DNA of 64,000 nucleotides from Epithemia pelagica (taxonomy: Eukaryota > Protista > Bacillariophyta), in assembly GCA_946965045.2 (NCBI GenBank), contig OX337232.1:2852001-2916000 (forward strand), written 5' to 3'. The translations under genes and the position numbers were made by a program. Positions 11,198 through 50,127 of the stretch are shown in pieces. The stretch's first letter is position 1. Every line of letters starts with the position of its first letter. A model generated the notes under the pieces. The model worked only from the letters and a program-made list of their open reading frames with translations, was not told where the DNA came from and did no database searches.

Positions 11198-11953
11198 TTA
11201 GGTATGAAAAAACAAATGAAACAATCCCTTTAGATACAAGACAATTTCTTTGGGTCCCAATTTGGATTCTCCATAGAGTCGATCGACAAAGACAATGGGA
11301 ACTTCCTGGATGCGGTATCCAGCTCGTTGCGCCAAGACGAGAATTTCCATTTGAAAGGCATAGCCGGTACATTGCACTTTGGGCAAGATTTGCACGAGGG
11401 CGGCCCGATCGTACAAGCGAAAACTGCCCGTCAAATCGGTACACTGTCGCGGATTTAGCAAGAAATGCGCCAAGACATTGGCTCCCCGGGAGGTGATTTT
11501 GCGTTTCCAATCCCAACCACACACACCCGCGTCGGGGGACCCCAAAATGTACCGCGAACCGCAGACAATGTCGACTTTTTTCGAGGTCGAATCATCACCA
11601 CTATTATTAGTATGATCCATGAGTTGAATCATTTGGGGAATGTATTTGGGATGATGCGACAAATCGGCATCCATGATAATGATGCGATCGCCCTTGCTCA
11701 CTTGTTGCAAGCCATCCAAATAGGCCGATCCCAAGCCCAACTTTCCGGGTCGTGACAAAATGGCAATCTTGTCCTTCCCATAGACGCGTTGCAATGTTTG
11801 CGCCACCTCCAAGGTCCCATCGGGAGATTGATCGTCGACCACGACAATTTCGTACCGCAGCTTGTGCTGGACAAACATTTGATCCAACAAATAGACCATG
11901 AGGGGTAAATTCTCGCGTTCATTGTATGTGGGCAATATCACGGAATACAACAT
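11198..11953 (-). CDS. DPM1: Dolichol-phosphate mannosyltransferase catalytic subunit (GT2)
   Basis: [82 protein letters not shown]. Confidence 0.93.
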
Positions 11954-12583: not shown

Positions 12584-15500
12584 ATGAAGGTTGGAGATTC
12601 GCTCAGCATGAATCTGGTGCTTGTGGCATTGCCATTGGTGATACTGTCAAGCAGTTGGACCACGATTCAGGCCTTTCAACACCAACATCAAGTCTCGGTG
12701 TCACGACCCTCCAACAGTTGGTTGGCCGCCGAAACCTCGTCGTCGTCCCCCGCTCCTGCCACCACGACAGGAGGAGACACGCCGGATCAGTCGTTGTTTG
12801 CTCGTCGGACCATTCAATTGGCCGATGCGGCCTCGCAGGGCAAATCGCGATGGGGACCTTCGGAAAATCGTCGGGCACAAAATTTGGCCCAAAGCATGGT
12901 TTTGACCAACAGTGCGTCTCCCATTGATCCACCCGCGACACCGGTGGAATTGCAAGACACGGCAATGGTGGGGGCGGCCCGACGCTTGCCGAAACAATGG
13001 GCGGCCCTCCGAGCGCAAGTCACTCAATTGCCGACGCAACCCAAGGAAACGGCAGCTGAACCCGTCGTCGACGATGCTGTGGCCTCCTTGCAGGCCGCCT
13101 TGCCCAAACAATGGGCGGCGTTGCGAGATTTGGTGGGTATGGCCCGTCTTCCTCGACAATGGGCCGCCTTGCGTCAAGAAGCCTCGGAACCAACGACGAC
13201 GGCATCCTCACCCGTGGCGCCACCGTCGTCCTCCTCCTCGTTGCCCCGTCAATGGGCAGCCCTTCGTGAAGAAACCAAGAAGACCGAATTGGCCCGTCCC
13301 TTCTTTGGGGATGTGGTCCAAACGACCACCAAGGAAGAAACACCCGCAGAACAAGTCGTTCCTCAAGAAGAAGCAGCAGCAGCACCGGTCGTGGGTACCG
13401 CCCTCAGTGGCCCTAAACTCTTCGAAGCCCGTACCTTGCAAGTGGCCGCAGCGGCGGAAGCAGGCATGTCGCGATGGGGAGCTCCCGAAAACCGACGGGC
13501 TGCCATGATGGCAGCGGCCTTGGCGGGAACTGCCCCGGCAGTTGCGGTGGAACCAACGCCGGCGGCCGCCACCACGGCCCCTCCGGCCGAAACGGTTCCT
13601 CCCAAGGCCGAGGAATCGGCCGCATTGGTGCCGAAACAAAAACCATCCATTGCCGCCCTTACGCGATCGATGGAATCGCGTTGGAGCAATTTGGCACGAA
13701 GTCCGGCCATGCGGGGAACTTCGTTGCCGATTCGAGCTCAACCCCGACCTCAATTGGCGAGCTTCAACAAATCTTCCTTGCTCACCCGAAACAATTACTT
13801 CCGGTCGCAACGTGTTCTTACGGGTGGCAACACGGCCTTGCCGCCATCGACCACACCCAGTGCCACTCGTCCCAACCAGTTTGCTCGACGAGTCCTCACG
13901 GGTGGCAACACAGCCTTGCCTCCGTCGACGACACCCAGTGCCACTCGTCCCAGCCAGTTTGCTCGACGTGTTCTTACGGGTGGCAACACGGCCTTGCCGC
14001 CGTCGACAACGCCCAATGCCAGTCGTCCCAATCAGTTTGTCCGTAATACGAGATTTGCTCGTGCGATTCCAGCCTCGCGACCCACTCTGGCGTCCCCGTC
14101 GGGATCGATTCGCAATGTCATTAGTCGACGACAAATTAGTGTGAACACCGACGAACAAGCCAGACCCGTCATGGCCGCGGCCGTGATTCGGGGACGCAAG
14201 GCCGCTACTCCTCCCAAGGCCCAGGAGCCCTCGGCTCCACCGGCAGCTCCACCCGTTCCCGTTACGAGCACTCCAGCACCGGCCGCACCACAAGTGCAAG
14301 GTCCACCGGGCAGCAGCGTGGCAACCGCCGCACCAGCACCACCCATTACGGAAGCCGAAGTGCGGGCCTTGTTTAATCTCTGGAACGACGCCTTGGCCAC
14401 ATTGGATTCGACCACTGTGGCGGAACGGTATGCAGCCGATCCCATTCTGCTTCCCACCGTGTCCGATGAACCCCGGACCGATTTTGCCAGCATTAAGGAT
14501 TATTTTGACAACTTTTTGAAACTCCAACCACAAGGTGTGATTGTGGAAGGAAAGGTCAAGATTGGACCCAATTGGGCGCAAGATGCGGGTATCTACGAAT
14601 TCACCATGGGTACGACTGGTGCCAAGGTTCGGGCTCGTTACTCCTTTGTCTACGTGTTTGAAGAGGGAGAATGGAAGATTGCCCATCATCACTCGTCCAC
14701 CATGCCCGAAGCTCCCGAAACGGTACCCACCGAAGATGAAGTCAAGGGGTTCTTCACACTGTGGAATGATGCTCTTGCCACGTGTACGTTTTCCATGGAG
14801 GCACTGTCGTGAGAGCTCAACCGTGCAGTATGTCTCACTCCTCTCTTGTGGTCTCTACCTTTTTATCGAAACAGTGGACTCGGATACTGTCGCACAACGT
14901 TATGCACAGAACGCGGTTTTGTTGCCGACAGTTTCCGATGTACCTCGTACAGACTATGCCAGCATCAAGGACTACTTTGACAACTTTTTGCAGCTCAAAC
15001 CAGAAGGTGTGATTCTAGACAGCTTTGTAACGACGGGAAAGAATTTGTGCAAGGATGTCGGTATTTACGAATTTACCTTGGGTGCGACTGGCGAAAAGGT
15101 TCGGGCTCGGTACTCCTTTGTTTACATCAAGGAAGGAATGGATTGGAAGATTTCTCACCATCATTCGTCCGTTATGCCGGAAGCTCAAGCAAGCAGTGCC
15201 ATCTCGGAAGAAGAAGTGCGGGATCTCTTCACGCTGTGGAACGATGCTCTTGCAACATGTACGTAGTCGAAGATGAGTAATTTGCTTTGATTTCCTGTCC
15301 AGATCTCAATTTTTTTGTTCTTACACCCTCTTGTGCATGCAGTGGACAGCGATAAGGTGGCCAGTCGGTACGCCAAGGAATCAGTGCTTCTCGCTACAGT
15401 ATCCGATGTCCCCCGCACGGACTATGCAAGCAAAAAGGCATACTTTGATGACTTTTTGAAGAAGGAACCCCAGGGTGAAATTTTGGAATCCTTTGTAGAA

Positions 15501-15662
15501 ATTGGCGACGGTTGGTGCAAAGATGTTGGCATTTATGAATTCACAATGGGTACCACTGGTGAAAAGGTCAAGGGTCGCTACTCCTTCCTCTATTCGTTTG
15601 AAGACGGAGAATGGAAGATTTTGCATCACCATTCCTCCATCATGCCCGAGAGCATTTTATAA
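12584..15662 (+). CDS. Gene B: plastid-targeted iota-class carbonic anhydrase (LCIP63/COG4875, NTF2/SnoaL-like) with 3 domains and a roughly 580-aa low-complexity N-terminal arm
   Basis: Exons 12584-14783, 14875-15258 and 15343-15662, with GT-AG phase-1 introns after WNDALAT. Three domains each contain LFxLWNDALAT...LLxTVSD.PRTD...YFD.FL...GIYEF...RYSF.Y...WKI.HHHSS.MPE. Leader TIQA|FQ. Confidence 0.88.
13811..14044 (+). repeat. Three 78-bp (26 aa) coding repeats in gene B
   Basis: RVLTGGNTALPPSTTP[SN]A[TS]RP[NS]QF[AV]R repeated three times. Confidence 0.9.
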
Positions 15663-16249: not shown

Positions 16250-16368
16250 AGGAACGACCATACCACGATGACAGCACCGCTTCCCGTCTGCTCAGCGAAG
16301 TTAAGCATCGTCGGGCCCGGTTAGTACTACGGTGGGGGACCACGTTGGAATCCCGGGTGTTGTTCTTT
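16250..16368 (+). rRNA. 5S rRNA gene, copy 2
   Basis: Same sequence as copy 1 except one substitution (GGCCCGGTT versus GGCCCAGTT). Ends in TTTT. Confidence 0.92.
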
Positions 16369-27817: not shown

Positions 27818-28127
27818 CGACAACGACAAACTCATTCGTATGGATTCGATCTGGGTTCTGTTGATTTTAGGAAATACTATTCGTTTCGACGGACCCTATT
27901 CGTTGACTCCACAAAAACTATGCAAAGTTGTATACGAGCAAAACTGCCACGGTAGTCCCACAGTTTCTCTGTATCATAACCTAGAGCCGCCGTCTTTATT
28001 TTTACAAATCTTTCCATGAAACATATAATTCTTTGTTGTATATGATTATACTTCATGACGCAAGAGCCATCCTAGGAAATAGATCGATCTAATCCATGGG
28101 TAAAGATGATCCTCCCAACAAACTGCA

Positions 28128-28246
28128 AAAGAACAACACCCGGGATTCCAACGTGGTCACCCACCGTAGTACTAACCGGGCCCGACGATGCTTAACTTCG
28201 CTGGGCAGACGGGAAGCGGTGCTGTCATCGTGGTATGGTCATTCCT
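28128..28246 (-). rRNA. 5S rRNA gene, copy 3 (variant)
   Basis: Full-length copy with three substitutions relative to copy 2 and an intact TTTT terminator. Confidence 0.88.
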
Positions 28247-38786: not shown

Positions 38787-40265
38787 ATGTCAACAGGAGC
38801 GACAACGGCTCCTCCTTTAACACCACGACCGACTCCACCGAGAGCACCGACGAGACCACGGTTAGGTGGGTTGAATGGCATCCATCCATGGACTGGAGGA
38901 AGGCCAACAGACAACACGTTCACCGCAACGACGCGAACTGTTCCACGTAGCCCCTACTGCTACCAGTTGCAGGACCCAACAGAGGCTCACAAAGGACTTA
39001 AGTACAAGACAACGATCTTGACAAGCGACACCGATTCGCGAAAGTTTACCAGAGACGAGAAGGAACTGACCATTGAACAGTTTGCAGAAATGGTGTCAGA
39101 GCATGTGGAGTTTCACGGAATGGATGCTGAGTTCTACCTTCCAGATCCCCAGAATCCGACACAATTGGTCAACATTCTGCATGAGGACTCGGAGTTCTCA
39201 CCCGCTTATGTTGTCACACACTTCCGAAATGCTCAAGCAGCGACAACACCACTGTATGACGATTACTCCACTAACAATATGGACCTCGCATACAAAGCAA
39301 TCATGGCTGTGTTGGATGAAACGGTGAAAACAAGCATTCGGCCACTCCTACCTAGAGATCTGCGCTACGGACCCATTCTTTGGATTTACGTCGTTCGCGA
39401 AGTGCGCACAGCCTCATTCCAACGAATCAAGGCTCTCAAAACCCAGTTAGAGTCTCTCAAGCTGCGGCAAACACCAGGCGAAGATGTTAAGGTGTTTACA
39501 ACCAAGTTTCTTCAAACTTGCGTTGAGTTGGGTCGCAATGTGCCAAGTGATGCTCCTTTCATCCTCAATGAGCAGCTGTGTACGTCTTCGGTTGAACAGT
39601 TTCGAGTGAAATTTATGGCACGGAGTACTGCCGTGAACCAGTGGGTCACAAAAGTGCATGGCTTATCCAAAGCTACCATTGATGCACGCTCAGCTGAACC
39701 TGACTATGTTTCTGTGCAAGACTTGGTTGAAGAAGCAAATGCAGAGTACACCCTCCTTTCGACTGCCGACCGCTGGGGCCCATCCGGAAAGGCCGATTCG
39801 GGAAACCCACCGGAAGCATTGACCTTCACCAAAGCTGAAATAAACAATCTCGTGCAGAAACAAGTGTCTGCTGCGCTCAAGAACAAGAATGTTAATGGTA
39901 AAGGCGGAGGCAATGGACGCAAATGCTATCTTTGTGGTTCCGAAGACCATCTAAAGAAAGACTGTCCCAAGAACCCTGCAAACCAACACGGTGGCGACAA
40001 GACCAACAAAAAGTCTAAAGCCCCCAAAGCACCATGGAAATCTATTGCGCCTGGACCAAACGAACCAGAAACGAAAAATGTGAACGGCACTGACTGGCAC
40101 TGGTGTGCCATTTGTGGTTTCTGGCGATTGTCCCATGGCACCGCCACACATCGAAATGACTTGCCTTCTTCGCAAACTGGCGACAAGAAAACAGCCAAAT
40201 CTGCTGGAGCAGCCTCCTTAGCTTTTGTTGGCGCTGCATCCATCCTTGATGACGATGAAGAATGA
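38787..40265 (+). CDS. gag: Copia Gag with CCHC zinc knuckle
   Basis: CYLCGSEDHLKKDC knuckle plus a second WHWCAICGFWRLSHGTATH Cys/His motif. Confidence 0.88.
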   Translation: MSTGATTAPPLTPRPTPPRAPTRPRLGGLNGIHPWTGGRPTDNTFTATTRTVPRSPYCYQLQDPTEAHKGLKYKTTILTSDTDSRKFTRDEKELTIEQFAEMVSEHVEFHGMDAEFYLPDPQNPTQLVNILHEDSEFSPAYVVTHFRNAQAATTPLYDDYSTNNMDLAYKAIMAVLDETVKTSIRPLLPRDLRYGPILWIYVVREVRTASFQRIKALKTQLESLKLRQTPGEDVKVFTTKFLQTCVELGRNVPSDAPFILNEQLCTSSVEQFRVKFMARSTAVNQWVTKVHGLSKATIDARSAEPDYVSVQDLVEEANAEYTLLSTADRWGPSGKADSGNPPEALTFTKAEINNLVQKQVSAALKNKNVNGKGGGNGRKCYLCGSEDHLKKDCPKNPANQHGGDKTNKKSKAPKAPWKSIAPGPNEPETKNVNGTDWHWCAICGFWRLSHGTATHRNDLPSSQTGDKKTAKSAGAASLAFVGAASILDDDEE

Positions 40266-43200
40266 CTGGTTGGGCGGATTCTGCTTTCCCTTTGGAGTTT
40301 CTTGGTATTGCTGAATCCACAGCCCATTTTATCCTTCGTCTTTGATTGTTGTTTGCGATTGATTCTCGCCATCGGGCGACTACTACACCAAAACCTTTGG
40401 CCTCGCAAACCGTATCGTCGGCATCGCCGTGCCTGTCGCTACTATCGTCGCTCGCCACTTGCAGTCTTACCCAAGCTGCTCGTGTGCTATTCTGCCATAA
40501 TCATGAGCACCCAAGCCATGACAAACGTACTTGGCGCACCGTTACACAAGTTTCCTTCGTTGATTGTCGCAAGTCGGCAATTCGACCACCGTGTCCGTGG
40601 TCCTCCTCGCTGGCATGATCGTCATGCGCCACGCGCTAGAGTTCCGACGCAAGAGCCCGACGAAGTGGAACCAACGCCCTTCGACTTTCCGGAGCCACCT
40701 ACTACGGGACGGCCTCCTCCTGAGATCCCAGAATTCGCCTTGCTGCTTCCACCCAACAACACAGAAGCCAATGTTGCTGCACCGTCAACAGAGGGAGCTG
40801 ACGTACCATTCACATGGACATCGCTCTTCTCTTCGAAACCAAAAGACTCTTTCCTGGTGACCTTCGATTCAGGGGCAACGATAACCATCTCGCCTACCAA
40901 AACTGATTTTGTTGAGTATACCGAAGTGGAAGGTTCCGTCTTGCAAGGATTAGCCAAGGGTCTTCCGATTGCTGGAACCGGGAAAGTCTGTTGGGGTATG
41001 ACCGTTGATGATGGAACTACAACGACCATCACCACGCCTGCATACCATGTACCTACCGCTCGTTGTCGTTTGCTTTCACCGCAAAGTTATCTTCAACATA
41101 GTGCCGAGGCCGGTCAAGACTCTCCAGAAAGCTTTGTCATCCGTGGAGCCAAATTTGAATATCACAAAAGTCACGCAAAACATGCCTCTGTCTCTTACAG
41201 TGAAGACAACAACCTTCCAACGTGCTCCATGTGGAATACCAAACCCTCCGTGCCTGCACCGGCAGCCAATACAACTGGGTGTGTTACCAACGAGCACAAC
41301 CCCAACCTTACATCGCCTCAGAAGGAGCTCCTGAAATGGCATTATCGTTTGTGCCATCAGGGCCTTGCTTCGCTCCAACGTTTGATGAAAACCGGCGCCC
41401 TTGGCAACTCTCCTTTGTTGCGCGCCGCCTCCAAGTGTGATCTCCCCAAATGTGCGAGCTGTGAATTTGGCAAAGCCACCCGTCGTCCGACAGACACTAC
41501 CACGAAAACCTCTGTGCCTGAGAGGGAGTATGGCCTTAAGAAGGAAAACCTGTTCCCTGGCCAACGTGTCTCGATGGACCATTTCACCGTTACGCAGAAG
41601 GGTCGCCTGTACTCGTCCAAAGGCAAAACCCACACCGACAGTATGTATTCGGGCGGTTGTATCTTCGTCGACCATGCAACAGGCGACATCCACATCGAAC
41701 ATCTCGTCAATTTTACAGCCACAGAGACTATCGCGGCTAAACAACGATACGAGAAACGCATGTTTGACATGGGAGTGACTGTCCAAGCCTACCAATCGGA
41801 CAATGGCATCTTTGCTTCGAAAGCTTTCGTGCAAGAAATTGAGAATGGTCTACAGAATATTAAGTTTAGTGGAGTTGGAGCGCATCACCAGAATGGCATC
41901 GCAGAGCGCGGCATTGGTACCATCCTTACAAAAGTCCGCACAATCTTGATTCACGCTGCCATTCGATGGCCTGACGCCGCTGATATGAGCTTGTGGCCTA
42001 TGGCCGTGGACTATGTCGTGCACCAGCACAACCATATGCCGAGAGCCAGTGCAGGAATGATGTCTCCGTTGGAATTGGTTTTACGGACGAAAGTGTCGCG
42101 TGCCTCTTTTCAGGACATGCATGTTTGGGGCTGTCCGTGTTACGTTCTTGAGCCGACCCTTCAGGACGGACACAAGCTGCCAAAGTGGAAGCCCCGTTCT
42201 CGCCGTGGAATTTTTCTCGGATTCTCTCGTCGTCATTCGTCGCGTGTACCATTGGTCTTGAATACTCGGACCGGTCACATCTCGCCGCAGTTTCACGTCG
42301 TCTTTGACGTTTGGTTTACCAGCGTCATTGGAACAGCCCGCGACGAACCATTTGATGCCAACCAGTGGACCCAACTCTTTGCAGATTCGAGGTACCACTA
42401 TGCTTTCGACGACGACGACCCCGTCGTTCTGGCTGATGAGTGGATGGACCGATATGCCGACAACGCTGAACGTTCTGCACAAATTCGGCAAGGCCAAGAC
42501 CAGCCTCAGCAGCAGAGGGAGCCTCCGCCACCTCGAACAGACGATGTATTGCAGGATCAGAGGGAGAGGCAACATCCTCCTAACCCTGATTCTCCTCCGT
42601 TACAACAACAACGTCCTGAACAGCCTCGAGAGACAGAAGAACCGCCGCCAGCACCACCGGATGGAACCGACGAGCCAGTGTTTGATCCGCCACCACCGCC
42701 TGTGCCGCCGTCACCAAACTTGCCTTCCTCCCCTTCTCCAGGAGTACGACGCTCCGGTAGACAACGAAAACCTCCTCTCCGTTGGGGTTATGATGGAACC
42801 CAAGGAGCAGGATATCAAGCCCTGAAGAGTTTCGCTCTCTTTGTTTCAGACGCCACGACAACGGCTGCTTATCAAGCCTATCTGGATGTCGATGATGAAA
42901 CAGACACGTACGGATTCCGTGATCCAATTGTGTACCAAGCCTCAACAAAGTCCAAGAAGAAGGATCCCGACTTGCCTTCGTACTTTGAAGCAATGACCGG
43001 GGACGACCGCGAGGGATTCACCAAAGCAATGGGAAACGAAGTCCGTGAATTAGAAGGAAAACACACATGGGACTTAGAGAAACGCTCCACCATGGAAGCA
43101 AAAGGTCGCAAAGCATTGCCCTCAACGTGGGCATTCCGGCGCAAACGGTATCCAGATGGATCCATTCGGAAACTAAAAGCAAGGTTGTGTGTGCGAGGCG

Positions 43201-44558
43201 ACAAACAGATCGAAGGAGTAGATTTCTTTGAAACCTACTCTCCTGTCGTGCAATGGACAACGATCCGCCTTGTTTTATTGTTGAGTCTGGTGTTCAATTG
43301 GGTGACAGTCCAAACGGACTATTCGAATGCGTTCGCCCAAGCGACTCTCGAAGAAGACGTGTATATGGAGCTGCCGAAGGATTTCGCCCCACAGGATAGC
43401 ACAGAAGATTATGTCTTGCGATTGCGCAAAACCTTATATGGCCTGAGACAAGCTCCCCTTTCTTGGTATGATCATTTGAAAGGCCACCTGGAGCAGCGTG
43501 GCTTCACTCAGAGCAAATATGATCCATGCCTTTTCTTTGATGCGACAAAGCAAATATTGTGCCTTGTCTACATTGATGATGTGATTTGGGTGGCACCGGA
43601 TGAAGCAAGAATTCTTAAAGTCTTGGACTCTTTGAAAGACGATCTCGAACTGACAGTAGAGGGAGACGTCTCCGCCTATCTGGGTATCGCCTTTGAACGA
43701 CTGGATGACGGCCAAATTAAGTTGAAACAGTTGGGACTGATTGAACGAGTGTTGAAAGCAACAGGGTTGCAAGAGTGCAATCCGGATAAGACTCCTGCGA
43801 GTCAGACTCCACTTGGAACAGACAAGGATGGAGCTGAGTTTTGCGAGAAATGGAGCTACTCGTCAGTGGTCGGCATGTTACTTTATTTGGCATCCAACTC
43901 CAGGCCGGAGATTGCGTTCGCCGTGCACCAGTGTGCAAGATTTACCCATAATCCAAAAGCCTCCCATGGACAAGCTGTCAAACGGATATGCCGATATTTG
44001 AAAGGGACCAAAGACCGAGGAATGATCTTGACACCGTCCAAACACTTGACCGTTGATTGCTATGTTGATTCGGACTTTGCCGGACAATGGAATGCCGAGG
44101 ATCCACAGGATCCATTGTGTGTAAAATCAAGAACCGGATATGTCTTGATGGTGGCCGGGTGCCCTGTTCACTGGGTATCAAAGCTTCAATCGGAGATTGC
44201 TGTGTCCACAATGGAAGCTGAGTACATCGCTCTCAGTCTTGCCATGCGTGATTTGCTACCGCTTCGGGGACTGGTTGCTGAAATTAAGGGAATGTTTGGC
44301 GCCAAGATCCTTCCATGCCGTGCCTATTCAAAAGTCTTCGAGGATAACAATGGGGCTTTGCTCTTGGCCACAACACCAAAGATGACGCCCAGATCAAAAC
44401 ATATTGCTGTGAAGTACCACTTTTTCAAGGAGAATGTCTCAAGGGGTGAGATTCAACTTGTAAAAGTCGCTTCCAAAGATCAAATTGCTGACTGTCTTAC
44501 CAAGGGGTTGGATAAGACTTTATTCGTCCGAGCAAGAGAGATGCTAGCTGGATGGTGA
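40266..44558 (+). CDS. pol: Copia Pol (protease, integrase, reverse transcriptase, RNase H), in frame with gag after a single TGA
   Basis: FDSGA protease, WHYRLCH...CASC HHCC, SMDH/SDNG/QNGIAER DDE core, WAFRRK...KARLCVRG and LVYIDD RT, YVDSDFAG/EAEY/EDN/ADCLTK RNase H. Confidence 0.93.
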   Translation: MVGRILLSLWSFLVLLNPQPILSFVFDCCLRLILAIGRLLHQNLWPRKPYRRHRRACRYYRRSPLAVLPKLLVCYSAIIMSTQAMTNVLGAPLHKFPSLIVASRQFDHRVRGPPRWHDRHAPRARVPTQEPDEVEPTPFDFPEPPTTGRPPPEIPEFALLLPPNNTEANVAAPSTEGADVPFTWTSLFSSKPKDSFLVTFDSGATITISPTKTDFVEYTEVEGSVLQGLAKGLPIAGTGKVCWGMTVDDGTTTTITTPAYHVPTARCRLLSPQSYLQHSAEAGQDSPESFVIRGAKFEYHKSHAKHASVSYSEDNNLPTCSMWNTKPSVPAPAANTTGCVTNEHNPNLTSPQKELLKWHYRLCHQGLASLQRLMKTGALGNSPLLRAASKCDLPKCASCEFGKATRRPTDTTTKTSVPEREYGLKKENLFPGQRVSMDHFTVTQKGRLYSSKGKTHTDSMYSGGCIFVDHATGDIHIEHLVNFTATETIAAKQRYEKRMFDMGVTVQAYQSDNGIFASKAFVQEIENGLQNIKFSGVGAHHQNGIAERGIGTILTKVRTILIHAAIRWPDAADMSLWPMAVDYVVHQHNHMPRASAGMMSPLELVLRTKVSRASFQDMHVWGCPCYVLEPTLQDGHKLPKWKPRSRRGIFLGFSRRHSSRVPLVLNTRTGHISPQFHVVFDVWFTSVIGTARDEPFDANQWTQLFADSRYHYAFDDDDPVVLADEWMDRYADNAERSAQIRQGQDQPQQQREPPPPRTDDVLQDQRERQHPPNPDSPPLQQQRPEQPRETEEPPPAPPDGTDEPVFDPPPPPVPPSPNLPSSPSPGVRRSGRQRKPPLRWGYDGTQGAGYQALKSFALFVSDATTTAAYQAYLDVDDETDTYGFRDPIVYQASTKSKKKDPDLPSYFEAMTGDDREGFTKAMGNEVRELEGKHTWDLEKRSTMEAKGRKALPSTWAFRRKRYPDGSIRKLKARLCVRGDKQIEGVDFFETYSPVVQWTTIRLVLLLSLVFNWVTVQTDYSNAFAQATLEEDVYMELPKDFAPQDSTEDYVLRLRKTLYGLRQAPLSWYDHLKGHLEQRGFTQSKYDPCLFFDATKQILCLVYIDDVIWVAPDEARILKVLDSLKDDLELTVEGDVSAYLGIAFERLDDGQIKLKQLGLIERVLKATGLQECNPDKTPASQTPLGTDKDGAEFCEKWSYSSVVGMLLYLASNSRPEIAFAVHQCARFTHNPKASHGQAVKRICRYLKGTKDRGMILTPSKHLTVDCYVDSDFAGQWNAEDPQDPLCVKSRTGYVLMVAGCPVHWVSKLQSEIAVSTMEAEYIALSLAMRDLLPLRGLVAEIKGMFGAKILPCRAYSKVFEDNNGALLLATTPKMTPRSKHIAVKYHFFKENVSRGEIQLVKVASKDQIADCLTKGLDKTLFVRAREMLAGW

Positions 44559-44844: not shown

Positions 44845-46734
44845 ATTGGGCGGCACGAAATCTTGCGAGACTGTCTTGCCGGTAAGTTGCTGGATCAAAT
44901 TTGCGCTACAGTTGGGTGTTGTTCTAATGTTGTTGTTCTTATGTTGTGTGTTTTACTCGGAACCTTTTCCTCGCCCACAGGTCATGGCCGATGACGGTAG
45001 CGGGCGTGACATTACCATTCCCTCGTTCTTGTTGTACAAAGAAGACGCGGATGCCATCAAGACTGTACTGATGGCCAATCAGACTGTCCGTGTGGCACTG
45101 AACTTCTCCATGCCCTTGCCCCATGACGCTGGAGATCCAGTGAAGTATGAGTTTTGGTCACGGCCATGGGATTCCGAATCGACCGACGTGTTCAACAAGT
45201 TTCGGTTTATCGCCAAGGCATTGGATCAGAACGCCCAGTTTACTCCGCACTTTTCTATTTACAATGGTGTCGCCGCTGGTTGTCGTTCGTCCGACGGAAC
45301 CAACCAATGTGGGACGCTGTGCACCAACGGTGGACGATACTGTGCCACCGAGGTGGACACTGCAGTGGGACACGGTGTTCACGGAGCGGACGTTGTGACG
45401 GAGTCCCTTCGACGCATTTGTCTGTGGTTAGCGTATGGAGAGGAGGACGGCATTGGGTTCAACTGGTGGACCTATATGGAAGAATTCATTCGTCAGTGTC
45501 ACAGTGGAGATGGCACGGACCATGTTTCCTACCCCCAATGTGTCGATGAGGTGTACCACCAAACCGGCATGGACAAGAACAAGATTGACGTTTGTATGCG
45601 TGACTCGGGTGGCCTCGAAACGGACAGGAACAATTCCTTGTTGGATGCACAAATGAGTTTGCAGGAGCAACAAGGAATTGTCCTCGTTCCCACCGCCTTG
45701 GTCAATGGAGCCCCCGTTCGCGGACAATTGAGTTCGGCCAACCTGTTCCAGGCCATTTGCTCGGCGTACACACCCGAAAAAAAGCCAGACGTGTGCAACC
45801 TGTGTGAGGCATGTGCGGACGTGAAGGAATGTGTGATGCAGGATGGAATCTGCCCGTCTCGATGATATACATGAGGTTATAATTCATTTGTGCACCATTC
45901 TACCTAGTTTGATTCTTTGGCGCACCATTGTATCGTTGCTTGGACATGCTTCACGAGTTTTCTTAGTTCGCTTATGACTCGATAGAGAGAAGCAAGGAAC
46001 GCAGCTATATCCCGTAGGTATTATATTATTACGGCATCCATCTTACAAGGTAGGAGTATCTAGGTTGTATGATTCATGAGTCATCAACCTAGACGATGAG
46101 GCCAATCATGCCAGCAACGACCTGGCAATCACTAATCACTCTCAAAGTGTAAGAGAGATCCCTTCCGTAGTCAATGTCCTTCTACCGTAGACAATGCCCG
46201 AAACAATTCAAAACGGCGGGCGTTATTCGAATAAATAGTGTGGACATGCGATCGCTAGCTAGTAGTGGAGTCCTGGAACGACTGGTGCTTCGCGTCGGGA
46301 CATTCCACAACATGTCGTCCTGGTACTTTCAGAGGTATCGTTGCACATTCTGCAGTACAGTCAGCATTGGTAGGAGTTTCGGTGCATCCGATTGGTAGGC
46401 CAATGACGTGGCTATGGTGGATGTTGGAACGAGATTTTTTTGGCCTCCAACATCAACACGACGCAGGATCATCTGTCGGGGGCGGGGTATCTAGGTCTTC
46501 CGAGAATTTTGTGGAGGAGATGAGTGATGAACGCGACCATCCGCTTCAATTCTATATCAATTTGGATCGATACAGACTCTTCTTCAATCAACGCTCTCCT
46601 CTTCTCTGTTACCTCTCCATTCGACACTCCTCTTTTCTATTGCCTGTGTCGGTGTGACAAAAAACCTCGCGAATCTCCAAAGGCACAAAGGAGAATCGTC
46701 GTGTTGCGTGAGAGAGATCGACAGCCAAGAAACC

Positions 46735-49700
46735 ATGGGATCGACCTCTTTTGTTGCTGGACGGCGGCGTTCCAGTGTCGTCCTACCAATACGGCCTGGT
46801 GGGTGGTGCATGGTCGTGTGTGGGATGGTTCAACTACTGGTTGGCGGCATGGGGAGGTGCCAGGCCTTTGTTCCATTGCATCCACAACGACAACAAGAAC
46901 GATCCTCTTTTTGGATTCGTCACGTTTCGACTGCTCCCACCCCCCTGTCCACTCCACCACCGTCCTGGCAGGACGACCTGCTCGAGGACAATGACAAGGA
47001 TGACGACCATGACGACTTGGAACAAGTGTATTGGATTCCCGATACGGAATTGGATCAAGAATTGGCCGAAGTGAGTGCCATGATGGCCGAATTGGAAGCC
47101 TACTTGCAAGAAGAACATGACAGTGACGACCATCATGACGAACCATCCTTCCAATCCACTCCCCAGGATGCGGACAATGACGATTTGATGCAAGCCTATC
47201 AACGCGCCAAATCGTCCTTGGAACTCTTGCAACACATTCGACACGATTTGCATTCCCTCAAGGATTCCTTACAAATGGATGACAATGAGGATGATGATGA
47301 TGGCGACAATGAGGATGAACCCGCCCTTCCCTTTTTCTTGACGGCACCTCCACAAGAAGAGGATACCACAAGTACTCCAACACTGGTGCCGCGTCCCCCC
47401 TTGCAGGCACCGTCTCGATTGGTTCTACGACAAGCGCAATGGGAATCCTCCTACAGTCAAAGCATTGATGCCCATTTGCAATGGCAACACCAAAAACGAC
47501 GACGACAACAACAACAACAACAACAACAAGACCTGACGACGCGAGCTGTCCAGTCACCACCACCAGGACGTCGTTCTCGTCGTTCTTCTTCTTCTTCTTC
47601 TTCTTCTTCTTCTTCCAACCCATTGGCCATTCCTCGTCGCCGGGTGGATTTTAGTAGCAACCGCAAGGCCTTGACCATTCCTCGACCGCGTCCGCCGCAA
47701 CAGCCTCCGTCGCGGGCCGTCTTACGACAAGCCGTGTTGGAATCGTCGTACGTCGAGAATGTCGAAAACCAGGACTGGTGGAGGCAGCATGTCCAGCGAC
47801 AACAAGAACGACTCGAAGAACAAGAACTAGAACCAGAACAACAAGACGAGGAGGAGACTGTGACGACGACACGTGTCGCATCTCGGGACGATATGGCCAC
47901 CACACCACCCATGATCCCATCAGACAAGAAAAAGAAGAATCCCGATACACGGGTCCGCAAAGCCGTCTTGCTCGATTCCGATGCATTGGCGGGCGATTCG
48001 ACCAAGAAGGAGGAGGATCCCCGCCGTGTCACCATGTTGCCCGGTTTTCGCAAACCACCCACGGTCCAAACCTTGTGGAGTGAAGGAACCACCACAACCA
48101 CAACAACTCCACGACCCATTCAACGACGCACGACCAGTACCACCACGATTCCCAACCAGGCATGGACCCGGCAACCACCCATTCGGAGGACGACCACCCC
48201 CACGGCACGCCCCGTCCCAACCGTCGTGACACAACAACAACAACAACAAACACCAGAGCGACAACCACAACAAACACCAGAACAACCACAAGTACCATCC
48301 CCAATCACGGCCCGTCGTAGCCCACCACAATCCCCACCACCACGACCGTTTCGGTCCGCCACAACCACAACAACGACAATACGGCGACCCAAACAATGGG
48401 CGCAACTCCAATCCCATGTCGCACAACTCCAACAACAACAAGAACAACCAGAAACAGCGTCGTCCGTTCCTACGTGGCACGTTGGCAATTCCCAAACACC
48501 ACAACAGCCACCACCACAGCCGTCTCTGGAGGAGACTCCAACAACACCAAAAATGACAAGGTCTACGAAACAATCGTTTCCAACAACACCCACGACTGCA
48601 CAACCACAATCACCGCCACCGACGGCGCCCTTTGGTCATTCCGTCGTTCGATCATCCTCCTCCACCCAAACGACGACGGCACGTTCCAAAACCACAACGG
48701 CTGCTGCTGCCGCCTTGGATCCCCAGGATCATGCATCTTCAATCCACCCCTCTCCCTTTCATCAACCCATTGGATCTCTCTCGGGGAATCCAACCAAACC
48801 AACCAGGACGACACCAACGACAAGGTTTAGATCTCCTTCCACGCCGACAACGACGACACAACCAACGACAACTCAAACAACCTCCATGACACGCAAGGTG
48901 GTCGGTGGAGCCTTTGTCCGAGAACGGCCACCCTTTTCCATGGCTCCTCGTCCCCAACAATTGGTACGAGATCCGCAACAACCCTTGACAAAATCCTCAT
49001 CCTTTGTATCAGCATCGTCTCCGTCGTCGTCCTCGTCGGTGAGCCGTCCGACTACGACTACGACCACCCAATCGGCCCCCAGCCGCCGGGCTCCCGACAC
49101 GAGCCATGCACAGAATACCAGTGTCTTGTGGACCCAACGGCATACCACGCCAGCCATGGAGGTGGACCAGCATGCCGTGAGACAAAGTCCGTCGTTGGTC
49201 AATCGGTTGCACCATCATCCCACCATTAGTCGTACGACGGCGGCCCACCAACGACGGCGTCAACAACAACAACAACAACAAGACCAAGAACTTCGACCAC
49301 ACCTTTTAGGAGATCCGCCCATTCCCGTCTCGGTCCAAGCCGAATCGCAAAAGACACTCCGATTCACCACGGCACAGATAGGCCGGGTCGGACTCTCGTT
49401 GCGGAATTTACAAGGCCGACCGGTTCATGCCCTGGTCCGGCTCTTGCAAGGTCCGGAGGATTGTCCCCAATACATTTCCGTCTACAGTGAAGATGGGGGA
49501 AGACATCCCTTTACCGCCATTTTGGAAACACCCGGCGACAACAATTCCCTTTGCATTTGCAACACTGGCCCTTCCCTGTCGTTTCCCCTGACGGGAACCG
49601 TCACTGCGGAATTGGAAGACGAATCCACACTCAATGCTCCTATGAGTACTACTACGACTTCCGAGGACAAGCACCCCAAACCGCCCTTGTTTTCGGTTCT

Positions 49701-50127
49701 GGATCGATTGGCGCAGTCCCCCACGGCGGCGCAACAAATGATTCAAGGAGGTGCCAGTCGTACCTTTGGATTGGATCAGGATGCCACTCGGGCTGAAATT
49801 ATGCTCACCACCAGTGGTCGGAGTCTCAATGCCGTCGTCGAGATTCTCTATGGACCGGACAATACCAAACAAGTCATGGAGGTTTATTCCGACAATGGCA
49901 CGGTGCGACCCTTGTTTGTGTCCATTGAAACGCCCCACGGAGGGTCGCTCATCAAGGTCCTGAACAAGGCACCCATTGCCTTTCCACTCACGGCCAGTGT
50001 CGAGGCCTTTTCCTCCTCCACGTCTTTTTCTCCAAGCAGTAGTACGCAACCAACGAGCAGCAGTAGGCGCCAATCTCAAAAGTCATTTACACGTGACTTT
50101 GAATTCTCGTCCTTTTCCACCCCGTGA
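46735..50127 (+). CDS. Gene E: plastid-targeted low-complexity protein with a C-terminal duplicated beta-rich domain of unknown function
   Basis: ORF open from 46654, likely start 46735. Leader RCQA|FVPL. Two C-terminal repeats of GRx[VL]xAx[VL]x[LI]LxGPxxxxQxxxVYSxxGxxxPxxxx[LI]ETPxxxxx[LI]x[IV]xNxxPxxFPLTxxV. One PKQWAQLQ motif. Confidence 0.7.
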   Translation: MGSTSFVAGRRRSSVVLPIRPGGWCMVVCGMVQLLVGGMGRCQAFVPLHPQRQQERSSFWIRHVSTAPTPLSTPPPSWQDDLLEDNDKDDDHDDLEQVYWIPDTELDQELAEVSAMMAELEAYLQEEHDSDDHHDEPSFQSTPQDADNDDLMQAYQRAKSSLELLQHIRHDLHSLKDSLQMDDNEDDDDGDNEDEPALPFFLTAPPQEEDTTSTPTLVPRPPLQAPSRLVLRQAQWESSYSQSIDAHLQWQHQKRRRQQQQQQQQDLTTRAVQSPPPGRRSRRSSSSSSSSSSSNPLAIPRRRVDFSSNRKALTIPRPRPPQQPPSRAVLRQAVLESSYVENVENQDWWRQHVQRQQERLEEQELEPEQQDEEETVTTTRVASRDDMATTPPMIPSDKKKKNPDTRVRKAVLLDSDALAGDSTKKEEDPRRVTMLPGFRKPPTVQTLWSEGTTTTTTTPRPIQRRTTSTTTIPNQAWTRQPPIRRTTTPTARPVPTVVTQQQQQQTPERQPQQTPEQPQVPSPITARRSPPQSPPPRPFRSATTTTTTIRRPKQWAQLQSHVAQLQQQQEQPETASSVPTWHVGNSQTPQQPPPQPSLEETPTTPKMTRSTKQSFPTTPTTAQPQSPPPTAPFGHSVVRSSSSTQTTTARSKTTTAAAAALDPQDHASSIHPSPFHQPIGSLSGNPTKPTRTTPTTRFRSPSTPTTTTQPTTTQTTSMTRKVVGGAFVRERPPFSMAPRPQQLVRDPQQPLTKSSSFVSASSPSSSSSVSRPTTTTTTQSAPSRRAPDTSHAQNTSVLWTQRHTTPAMEVDQHAVRQSPSLVNRLHHHPTISRTTAAHQRRRQQQQQQQDQELRPHLLGDPPIPVSVQAESQKTLRFTTAQIGRVGLSLRNLQGRPVHALVRLLQGPEDCPQYISVYSEDGGRHPFTAILETPGDNNSLCICNTGPSLSFPLTGTVTAELEDESTLNAPMSTTTTSEDKHPKPPLFSVLDRLAQSPTAAQQMIQGGASRTFGLDQDATRAEIMLTTSGRSLNAVVEILYGPDNTKQVMEVYSDNGTVRPLFVSIETPHGGSLIKVLNKAPIAFPLTASVEAFSSSTSFSPSSSTQPTSSSRRQSQKSFTRDFEFSSFSTP

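Follow-up and report, generated by a model that had tools for sequence, protein, structure and literature searches.

About one-fifth of global CO2 fixation is due to diatoms. To our knowledge, how they recruit enzymes to the pyrenoid is largely unknown, and the only characterized linker is PYCO1, restricted to some pennate species. PYCO1 of Phaeodactylum tricornutum is plastid addressed and mostly disordered, with short tryptophan-centered helical stickers between spacers, and one of its helices, AAEWGSMNQ, has been seen by cryo-electron microscopy in a cleft of the Rubisco large subunit (LSU) (PMC10288592). In Chlamydomonas, EPYC1, SAGA1/2, and RBMP1/2 follow the same concept, one short motif in different proteins targeting a common organelle and linking its parts (PMC7673724). 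Among carbonic anhydrases of the iota type (iota-CAs), LCIP63 of Thalassiosira pseudonana has a plastid presequence and repeated CaMKII_AD domains, with the signature (H)HHSS near the domain end (PMC6776030). Here, we analyze a 64,000-nucleotide window of nuclear DNA from the pennate diatom Epithemia pelagica (C5:2852001-2916000; the genome comprises 60.5 Mb in 23 contigs) and describe a short repeated sequence, the RWG module, shared by gene B, a putative plastid iota-CA, and its nonenzyme neighbor, gene A. Both belong to a cluster whose proteins resemble PYCO1 in being plastid addressed and mostly disordered, with short helical motifs between spacers.

The RWG motif common to genes A and B is confirmed as real. 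The first-pass annotation of the window, made from the sequence alone, had aligned two strings in the arm of gene B (at 12794 and 13418) with five copies in gene A (the first at 6856) and proposed that a structured-looking motif was shared; all of these strings were recovered at those positions, and the similarity held against shuffled controls. In Smith–Waterman comparisons, the gene A unit scored 52-55 against the gene B arm, where the null distribution gave 25-26 ± 3.8, and none of 3,000 shuffles reached the observed score, whichever partner was shuffled. A profile built from the seven copies and searched in six frames through the 60.5 Mb found seven further copies in three nearby genes, giving 14 sites in all and nothing else credible, and a second-round profile from eleven distinct copies returned the same 14 sites, with the next matches at E above 2. 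Another profile was built entirely from 132 modules found in other organisms, without the proteins of this genome and the orthologues of genes B and G. In the six frames of the window, this foreign-only profile matched exactly the five sites of gene A (26-29 bits) and the two of gene B (41-44 bits). The modules of gene A, located by string match and by own-genome and foreign-only profiles, lie at 6847-6954, 7423-7530, 7795-7902, 8152-8259, and 8530-8637 (+). In gene B, module 1 (residues 68-104; 12785-12895, +) scores 69-70 bits against the profiles made from this genome and 40.8 bits against the foreign-only one, and module 2 (residues 276-312; 13409-13519, +) scores 65-69 and 43.6 bits. Judged from sequence, the gene B copies are more canonical than those of gene A.

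The module is about 37 residues long, with the consensus LYxxRNAxVAAAAxAGKSRWGxxExxRA, and over 146 diverse copies an R, a G, the S-R-W-G string, and an E are near invariant. AlphaFold2, run on the module alignment, placed a helix at positions 7-23, a seven-residue loop holding S-R-W-G, and a second helix at 31-46, with a mean predicted local distance difference test score (pLDDT) of 83.9. The RWG is thus predicted to be a small autonomous helix–loop–helix, its first helix basic and alanine rich, its loop conserved as G-K-S-R-W-G, and its second helix starting with a glutamate. The same picture emerged in the context of the protein: for residues 1-600 of gene B, pLDDT fell below 50 at 461 of the 600 residues, and ahead of the CA domains only the two RWG modules stood out as confidently predicted (pLDDT 80-82 and 88-89), the first with helices at 71-84 and 92-109 around the loop. 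The structured look attributed to the motif from its letters is borne out by these models.

In sequence and fold, the RWG is an undescribed module. Pfam gave no consistent match among the 146 single modules or the whole RWG proteins; a DUF7007 assignment in one protein (P0005) was dismissed, as it came from a summed score only, with no single stretch passing, and was absent from the module-level search. The best match of a profile search against the PDB was an alanine-rich helix of ITPKA at E 0.025, which we took as chance, Foldseek with the hairpin as query returned nothing at E ≤ 0.001, a search of the ESM Atlas gave no usable match, and the motif string brought up nothing relevant in a full-text search of the literature. 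The RWG differs from the PYCO1 sticker in being longer, in having two helices, and in carrying its tryptophan in the loop. Descent from the LSU-binding helix of PYCO1 was tried and rejected: hhalign gave a probability of 1.4%, with only four columns (around WG) aligned. In gene B itself, there is no LSU-type helix of the form xxEW[GA]SMNx, the string KWSP (of the small-subunit sticker KWSPRGGS) occurs zero times, and the Chlamydomonas motif [D/N]W[R/K]xx[LIVA] (PMC7673724) is absent, neither RWGxxE nor QWAALR fitting it. The N-terminal Rubisco-binding peptide of CsoS2 from alpha-carboxysomes is likewise a repeated basic Arg/Lys helix ending in G-K within a disordered scaffold. We mention this as a lead only and claim no homology, the PDB profile search containing no such match at E ≤ 10.

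Gene B (12584-15662, +) has three exons and two introns, and the joined translation is 967 residues long with a single terminal stop; the model was built on canonical splice sites and the annotated orthologue of Epithemia clementina, the exons being joined by a local script for translation and for alignment with the latter, and the searches being run on the separate exons. Exon 1 (12584-14783) is a continuous open reading frame (ORF) that encodes the signal peptide, the disordered arm, and the first iota-CA domain and ends at a GTACGT donor starting at 14784. Exon 2 (14875-15258), behind an acceptor AG at 14873-14874, encodes the second domain, and exon 3 (15343-15662), with the donor at 15259 and the acceptor AG at 15341-15342, the third domain and the stop. 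From the splice-site reading, both introns (14784-14874 and 15259-15342) have the form GTACGT...AG, and the first junction restores ALAT-LDSD, matching domain 1. The signal peptide (12584-12676), read from the translation, ends in an IQA/F junction of the diatom plastid-import type. PF08332 (CaMKII_AD) matches in all three exons, each time above the gathering score (E 2.9e-14 for the first domain at 14351-14707, residues 590-708; 4.5e-8 in exon 2; 3.6e-7 in exon 3), and HHHSS is found in domains 1 (at 14684), 2, and 3. Because it has three CaMKII_AD domains, each with HHHSS, gene B is, by its sequence, a plastid-addressed triple iota-CA. LCIP63, as far as we know, lacks a long arm. Gene B is unlike it in placing about 555 disordered residues with docking-type modules before the enzyme.

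This arm (roughly residues 32-585) contains further repeated elements that the first reading had listed and that were found again. Four LP[KR]QWAALR motifs of 27 nucleotides each were located by string search at 12986, 13100, 13148, and 13241 (spanning 12986-13267, +); AlphaFold2 makes them helical at a pLDDT of 45-69. The three 26-residue tandem repeats correspond to a 78-bp array of 2.8 copies with 88% matches (13820-14039, +; Tandem Repeats Finder). A third conserved island, ESRWS...RPQLA (13673-13759, +), is recognizable in both orthologues described below. Genome-wide, the DNA pattern for P[KR]QWAA gave 10 matches against 2 for the reversed control; 7 of the 10 belong to genes B, C, and G, and 2 to arm fragments resembling gene C on contig C18. 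The latter, at C18:1247880 and C18:1296823, are two identical 66-residue ORF fragments (RQAETTRSIPRQWAALRAFTSH) copying the 5' arm of gene C and are probably pseudogene pieces within a repeated element.

Comparison with two other species separates conserved modules from divergent spacers. The E. clementina orthologue P0292 (ACA910_004014, 1,004 residues) shares the layout of gene B, with two RWG modules in its arm and three iota-CA domains behind it. Identity with gene B is 73% in RWG module 1, 57% in module 2, and 79% in the CA domains, against 29-33% in the spacers. In a third species (ENA assembly ERZ25042306), the arm P0015 has four copies each of the RWG module and of LPRxWAxLR. Its RWG and QWAALR motifs match those of gene B at 70% identity, and the rest of the arm at 30%. 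Conservation that favors the modules over the spacers in this way is what one would expect if short functional modules were set in a disordered chain that is otherwise free to evolve. A GT2 gene resembling dolichol-phosphate mannosyltransferase (DPM1) lies just upstream of gene B (11198-11953, –) and also adjoins the gene B orthologue in ERZ25042306 (L017 8546-9328), a small conserved synteny.

For the wider distribution of the module, we searched 1.84 billion representative proteins exhaustively with HMMER. Matches to the RWG at E ≤ 1e-3 came from at least 204 protein clusters, 152 clusters matched at E ≤ 1e-10, and the named sources are exclusively diatoms, centric and pennate, with all entries labeled "hypothetical." The genera include Cyclotella, Skeletonema, Stephanodiscus, Thalassiosira, Odontella, Rhizosolenia, Pseudo-nitzschia, Fistulifera, Seminavis, Cylindrotheca, Amphora, Entomoneis, Nitzschia, and Epithemia; among the matches named in word-index searches, none belongs to P. 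tricornutum or T. pseudonana. The RWG is thus pan-diatom, whereas PYCO1 has been reported as not widely conserved. The 264 proteins fetched contain 819 modules, usually two or three each and at most 15-16, spaced by a median of 72 residues. An RWG-bearing arm of the gene B kind was found only in the Epithemia-like lineage.

Most RWG proteins have a different architecture, which we call type I: 250-600 residues, a signal peptide with an A/F junction, an N-terminal coiled-coil region, ADHGLRxDGGVGGPSLAERVNLGA motifs, and RWG modules set between spacers of Ala/Ser/Pro. Representatives from Cyclotella (KAL7485048.1), Fistulifera (FisN_36Hh025), and Nitzschia (NITZ4_003694) carry the same module, and the gene B copies are near their consensus (41-44 bits). 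Gene B shares the module with them and not the architecture: type I proteins have the coiled coil and the ADHGLR motifs and no enzyme, and the coiled-coil region (EERAAALSxYxAKxHEEKLRA..., YQxFMxxYIVKAQEEK) does not occur in gene B. No type I protein was found in the E. pelagica genome, where a whole-genome search with P0236 matched only the RWG modules of genes G and B. The motif ADHGLRxDGGVGGPSLAERVNLGA, conserved in P0027, P0029, P0089, P0236, and P0262 of other diatoms together with a VNLGAxLLG-like C terminus, is, like that C terminus, undescribed, and both are absent from the RWG genes of E. pelagica.

One type I protein bears on the identity of the partner. Both Rubisco subunits are plastid encoded in diatoms. 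The nonphotosynthetic Nitzschia sp. Nitz4 has a plastid genome without carbon-fixation genes, and apochlorotic diatom plastids lack thylakoids (10.1101/298810). Its plastid-addressed type I protein, NITZ4_003694, has eight well-conserved RWG modules, six of them near identical.

In E. pelagica, all 14 genomic copies fall in five genes within 118 kb (C5:2840569-2958478). Gene E, on the plus strand at 1396-2988 of locus L013, about 11 kb before the window, has one RWG, three PYCO1-type helices, and six AADTGTRRMPLNEVKQIATRWDSV repeats. Gene A (5230-10599, +; an ORF with its likely start methionine at 5230) encodes a plastid-addressed disordered repeat protein without a Pfam domain above the cutoff; its N terminus, read from the sequence, has a hydrophobic stretch after the start methionine and then a GAF/AP junction. 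Its five RWG modules alternate one to one with PYCO1-type xLARxWGAMN helices, and helices of the xLARxW form number 18. Gene B (12584-15662, +) contributes two modules with its four QWAALR motifs and three iota-CA domains. Gene F (C5:2946591-2943340, –) has one RWG in an extended form and about nine PYCO1-type helices, and gene G (C5:2963284-2951378, –), a 3,969-residue ORF with an ATA/F junction, has five RWG modules, four QWAA-type motifs, and several PYCO1-type helices. Two of the gene G modules are in the extended form, with LPDRYQVVxxWAxR preceding them; the protein also carries about 17 YSPWSGNWKQAQDPKE repeats (SPWSGNWKQ) and QQPWQPPQNW repeats, and its E. clementina orthologue is KAL7567412.1.

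Helices of the PYCO1 type, matching AAEWGSMNQ, are present in A, E, F, and G, all the RWG genes except B. Four more stand at the end of gene D within the window, so that five genes in all share the LSU-binding helix of PYCO1. Gene C, also in the window, is a second iota-CA, with LPKQWAAVR and IPRQWAAMR in its arm. Gene H (46654-50127, +), a 1,157-residue ORF with a CQA/F junction, has a PF25192 pyrenoid-shell domain (E 2e-52, residues 891-1117). Its disordered arm of about 890 residues, with RRPKQWAQL, is unusual in a shell protein. All seven clustered proteins inspected by eye (A, B, C, E, F, G, and H) showed [AG]/F, a junction typical of plastid import in diatoms. To call genes A and B otherwise unrelated neighbors, as had been done, is too strong, since both are members of a 118-kb group of genes for disordered, plastid-addressed proteins with several short motifs in common.

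The window also contains repeated DNA. Genes for 5S rRNA (RF00001, 98-103 bits) lie at 4506-4624 (–) and 16250-16368 (+), with a third copy near 28112-28246. The first two form a 145-nucleotide inverted repeat flanking genes A, DPM1, and B, and about 15 near-full copies are dispersed genome-wide; a transposon end, which such a repeat around genes A and B might have been, was ruled out on this account. A gag-like ORF followed by a 1,418-residue integrase/reverse-transcriptase ORF (38787-44558, +) looks, as judged by reading, like a retrotransposon of the Ty1/copia type within the cluster.

The best reading of the sequence evidence is that the RWG is a module for a common docking partner, because the modules are selectively conserved between orthologues and occur as multivalent, spacer-separated copies in hundreds of proteins. 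In its specific form, to which we give a probability of about 0.45, gene B would dock through multivalent RWG contacts on the plastid scaffold of its neighbors, probably that of the pyrenoid, through a partner more likely to be RWG or non-Rubisco than Rubisco. The two RWG modules and the four LP[KR]QWAALR helices are the only parts of the arm predicted to be ordered, and the former would act as multivalent docking sites holding the iota-CA on the plastid scaffold addressed by A, E, F, and G. This scaffold would most likely be the pyrenoid's, because Rubisco-binding helices occur in all of the RWG genes but B, and because a shell-domain gene and another iota-CA with an arm lie in the cluster. 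Gene B would reach the pyrenoid indirectly, via proteins such as A and G, and the probable end result is a carbonic anhydrase tethered in or around it. Another RWG hairpin, or a conserved non-Rubisco component of the plastid, would be a more likely direct partner than Rubisco, because Nitz4, without plastid carbon-fixation genes, keeps an eight-module protein. What we show is that the module is real, how it is distributed and clustered, that it is selectively conserved, and which fold is predicted for it; docking, partner, and location are inferred. The parallel with Chlamydomonas is one of concept, as the lineage and the Rubisco form differ and the binding of the RWG is only a candidate activity.

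Several observations weigh against this proposal. A lone hairpin of 37 residues may be unstable, and the AlphaFold2 confidence may reflect helical propensity and the alignment. The QWAALR part of the arm would be dispensable or lineage specific, because P0292 of E. clementina is without these motifs, P0015 keeping a motif of the LP[KR]QWAALR type. The P0015 arm, for its part, has no CA domain within 10 kb. The pyrenoid placement amounts to guilt by association with neighbors whose own role there is putative. The T. pseudonana LCIP63, the type iota-CA, is found at the chloroplast periphery and not in the pyrenoid (PMC6776030), and a nonpyrenoid location is possible for gene B for that reason.

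Rubisco could itself be the partner, with the RWG as a second sticker beside the PYCO1-type LSU helix, gene B recruited directly to the Rubisco matrix, and the multimodule proteins serving as linkers. The one-to-one alternation of RWG and LSU helices in gene A does resemble the two-sticker layout of PYCO1 (PMC10288592), basic modules placed 51-108 residues apart recall linkers of the EPYC1 type, and centric diatoms have no known linker (10.1101/2023.10.26.564148). We nevertheless find this improbable, since Nitz4, having lost plastid carbon-fixation genes and thylakoids, keeps its eight well-conserved modules, the RWG profile is unrelated to the LSU helix (the 1.4% and four columns given above), the module does not fit the Chlamydomonas motif, and the study of the T. 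pseudonana pyrenoid reported no such repeat protein (10.1101/2023.10.26.564148). Much the same low odds apply to the binding of a surface other than protein, in which the K-S-R-W loop would contact acidic membrane lipids, or the module plastid nucleic acid, and the CA would sit at the envelope or periphery with no link to the pyrenoid. The basic module with a tryptophan in an exposed loop, the persistence of the family in a plastid without thylakoids or Rubisco, and the peripheral LCIP63 would all suit such a role, but no nucleic-acid- or membrane-binding Pfam family was consistent among the 146 modules, helix 1 is alanine rich and not hydrophobic, and one would have to explain separately why several proteins combine the module with Rubisco-binding helices.

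The history of the modules bears on the two remaining explanations. Between genes A and B, the modules are 28-39% identical in amino acids and 47-54% in nucleotides, the most distant pair in the genome; those of B come closest to the modules in the middle of gene G (46-49%) and are orthologous to modules of other species, and those of A come closest to gene E (49-54%). The RWG modules are old paralogues, and their clustering points to ancient local duplication, not to a recent A–B exchange. Recent module shuffling by local recombination, the other suggestion of the first-pass annotation, had in its favor that the two genes are about 2 kb apart and that inverted, dispersed 5S rRNA genes flank the A–B block; with the A and B modules as far apart as they are, and those of B closest to gene G and to orthologues elsewhere, we regard it as very improbable. 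The possibility that common descent is the whole explanation, the RWG serving structure or solubility in a gene family that expanded locally and in which A and B share no function, agrees with the presence of every genomic copy in one 118-kb cluster, as from tandem duplication. It seems distinctly unlikely, however, because R, G, S-R-W-G, and E are near invariant from centric to pennate diatoms and the spacers drift without constraint, as expected of a functional site.

The docking proposal also has a wider form, to which we are inclined to give only limited credence. The RWG would be a universal plastid sticker of diatoms, self-associating or binding one conserved hub, the scaffold would predate its use in the pyrenoid, type I proteins would be the missing matrix or organizing scaffold of centric diatoms, in which PYCO1 is lacking, and enzymes such as this iota-CA would become clients by acquiring one or two modules.

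The findings provide an undescribed, strongly conserved, and multivalent module across centric and pennate diatoms, fused here to a CO2-handling enzyme and surrounded by Rubisco-sticker and pyrenoid-shell genes, and with it a concrete experimental handle on pyrenoid recruitment. Its retention in a nonphotosynthetic diatom is at the same time a warning that not every tryptophan "sticker" near pyrenoid genes binds Rubisco.

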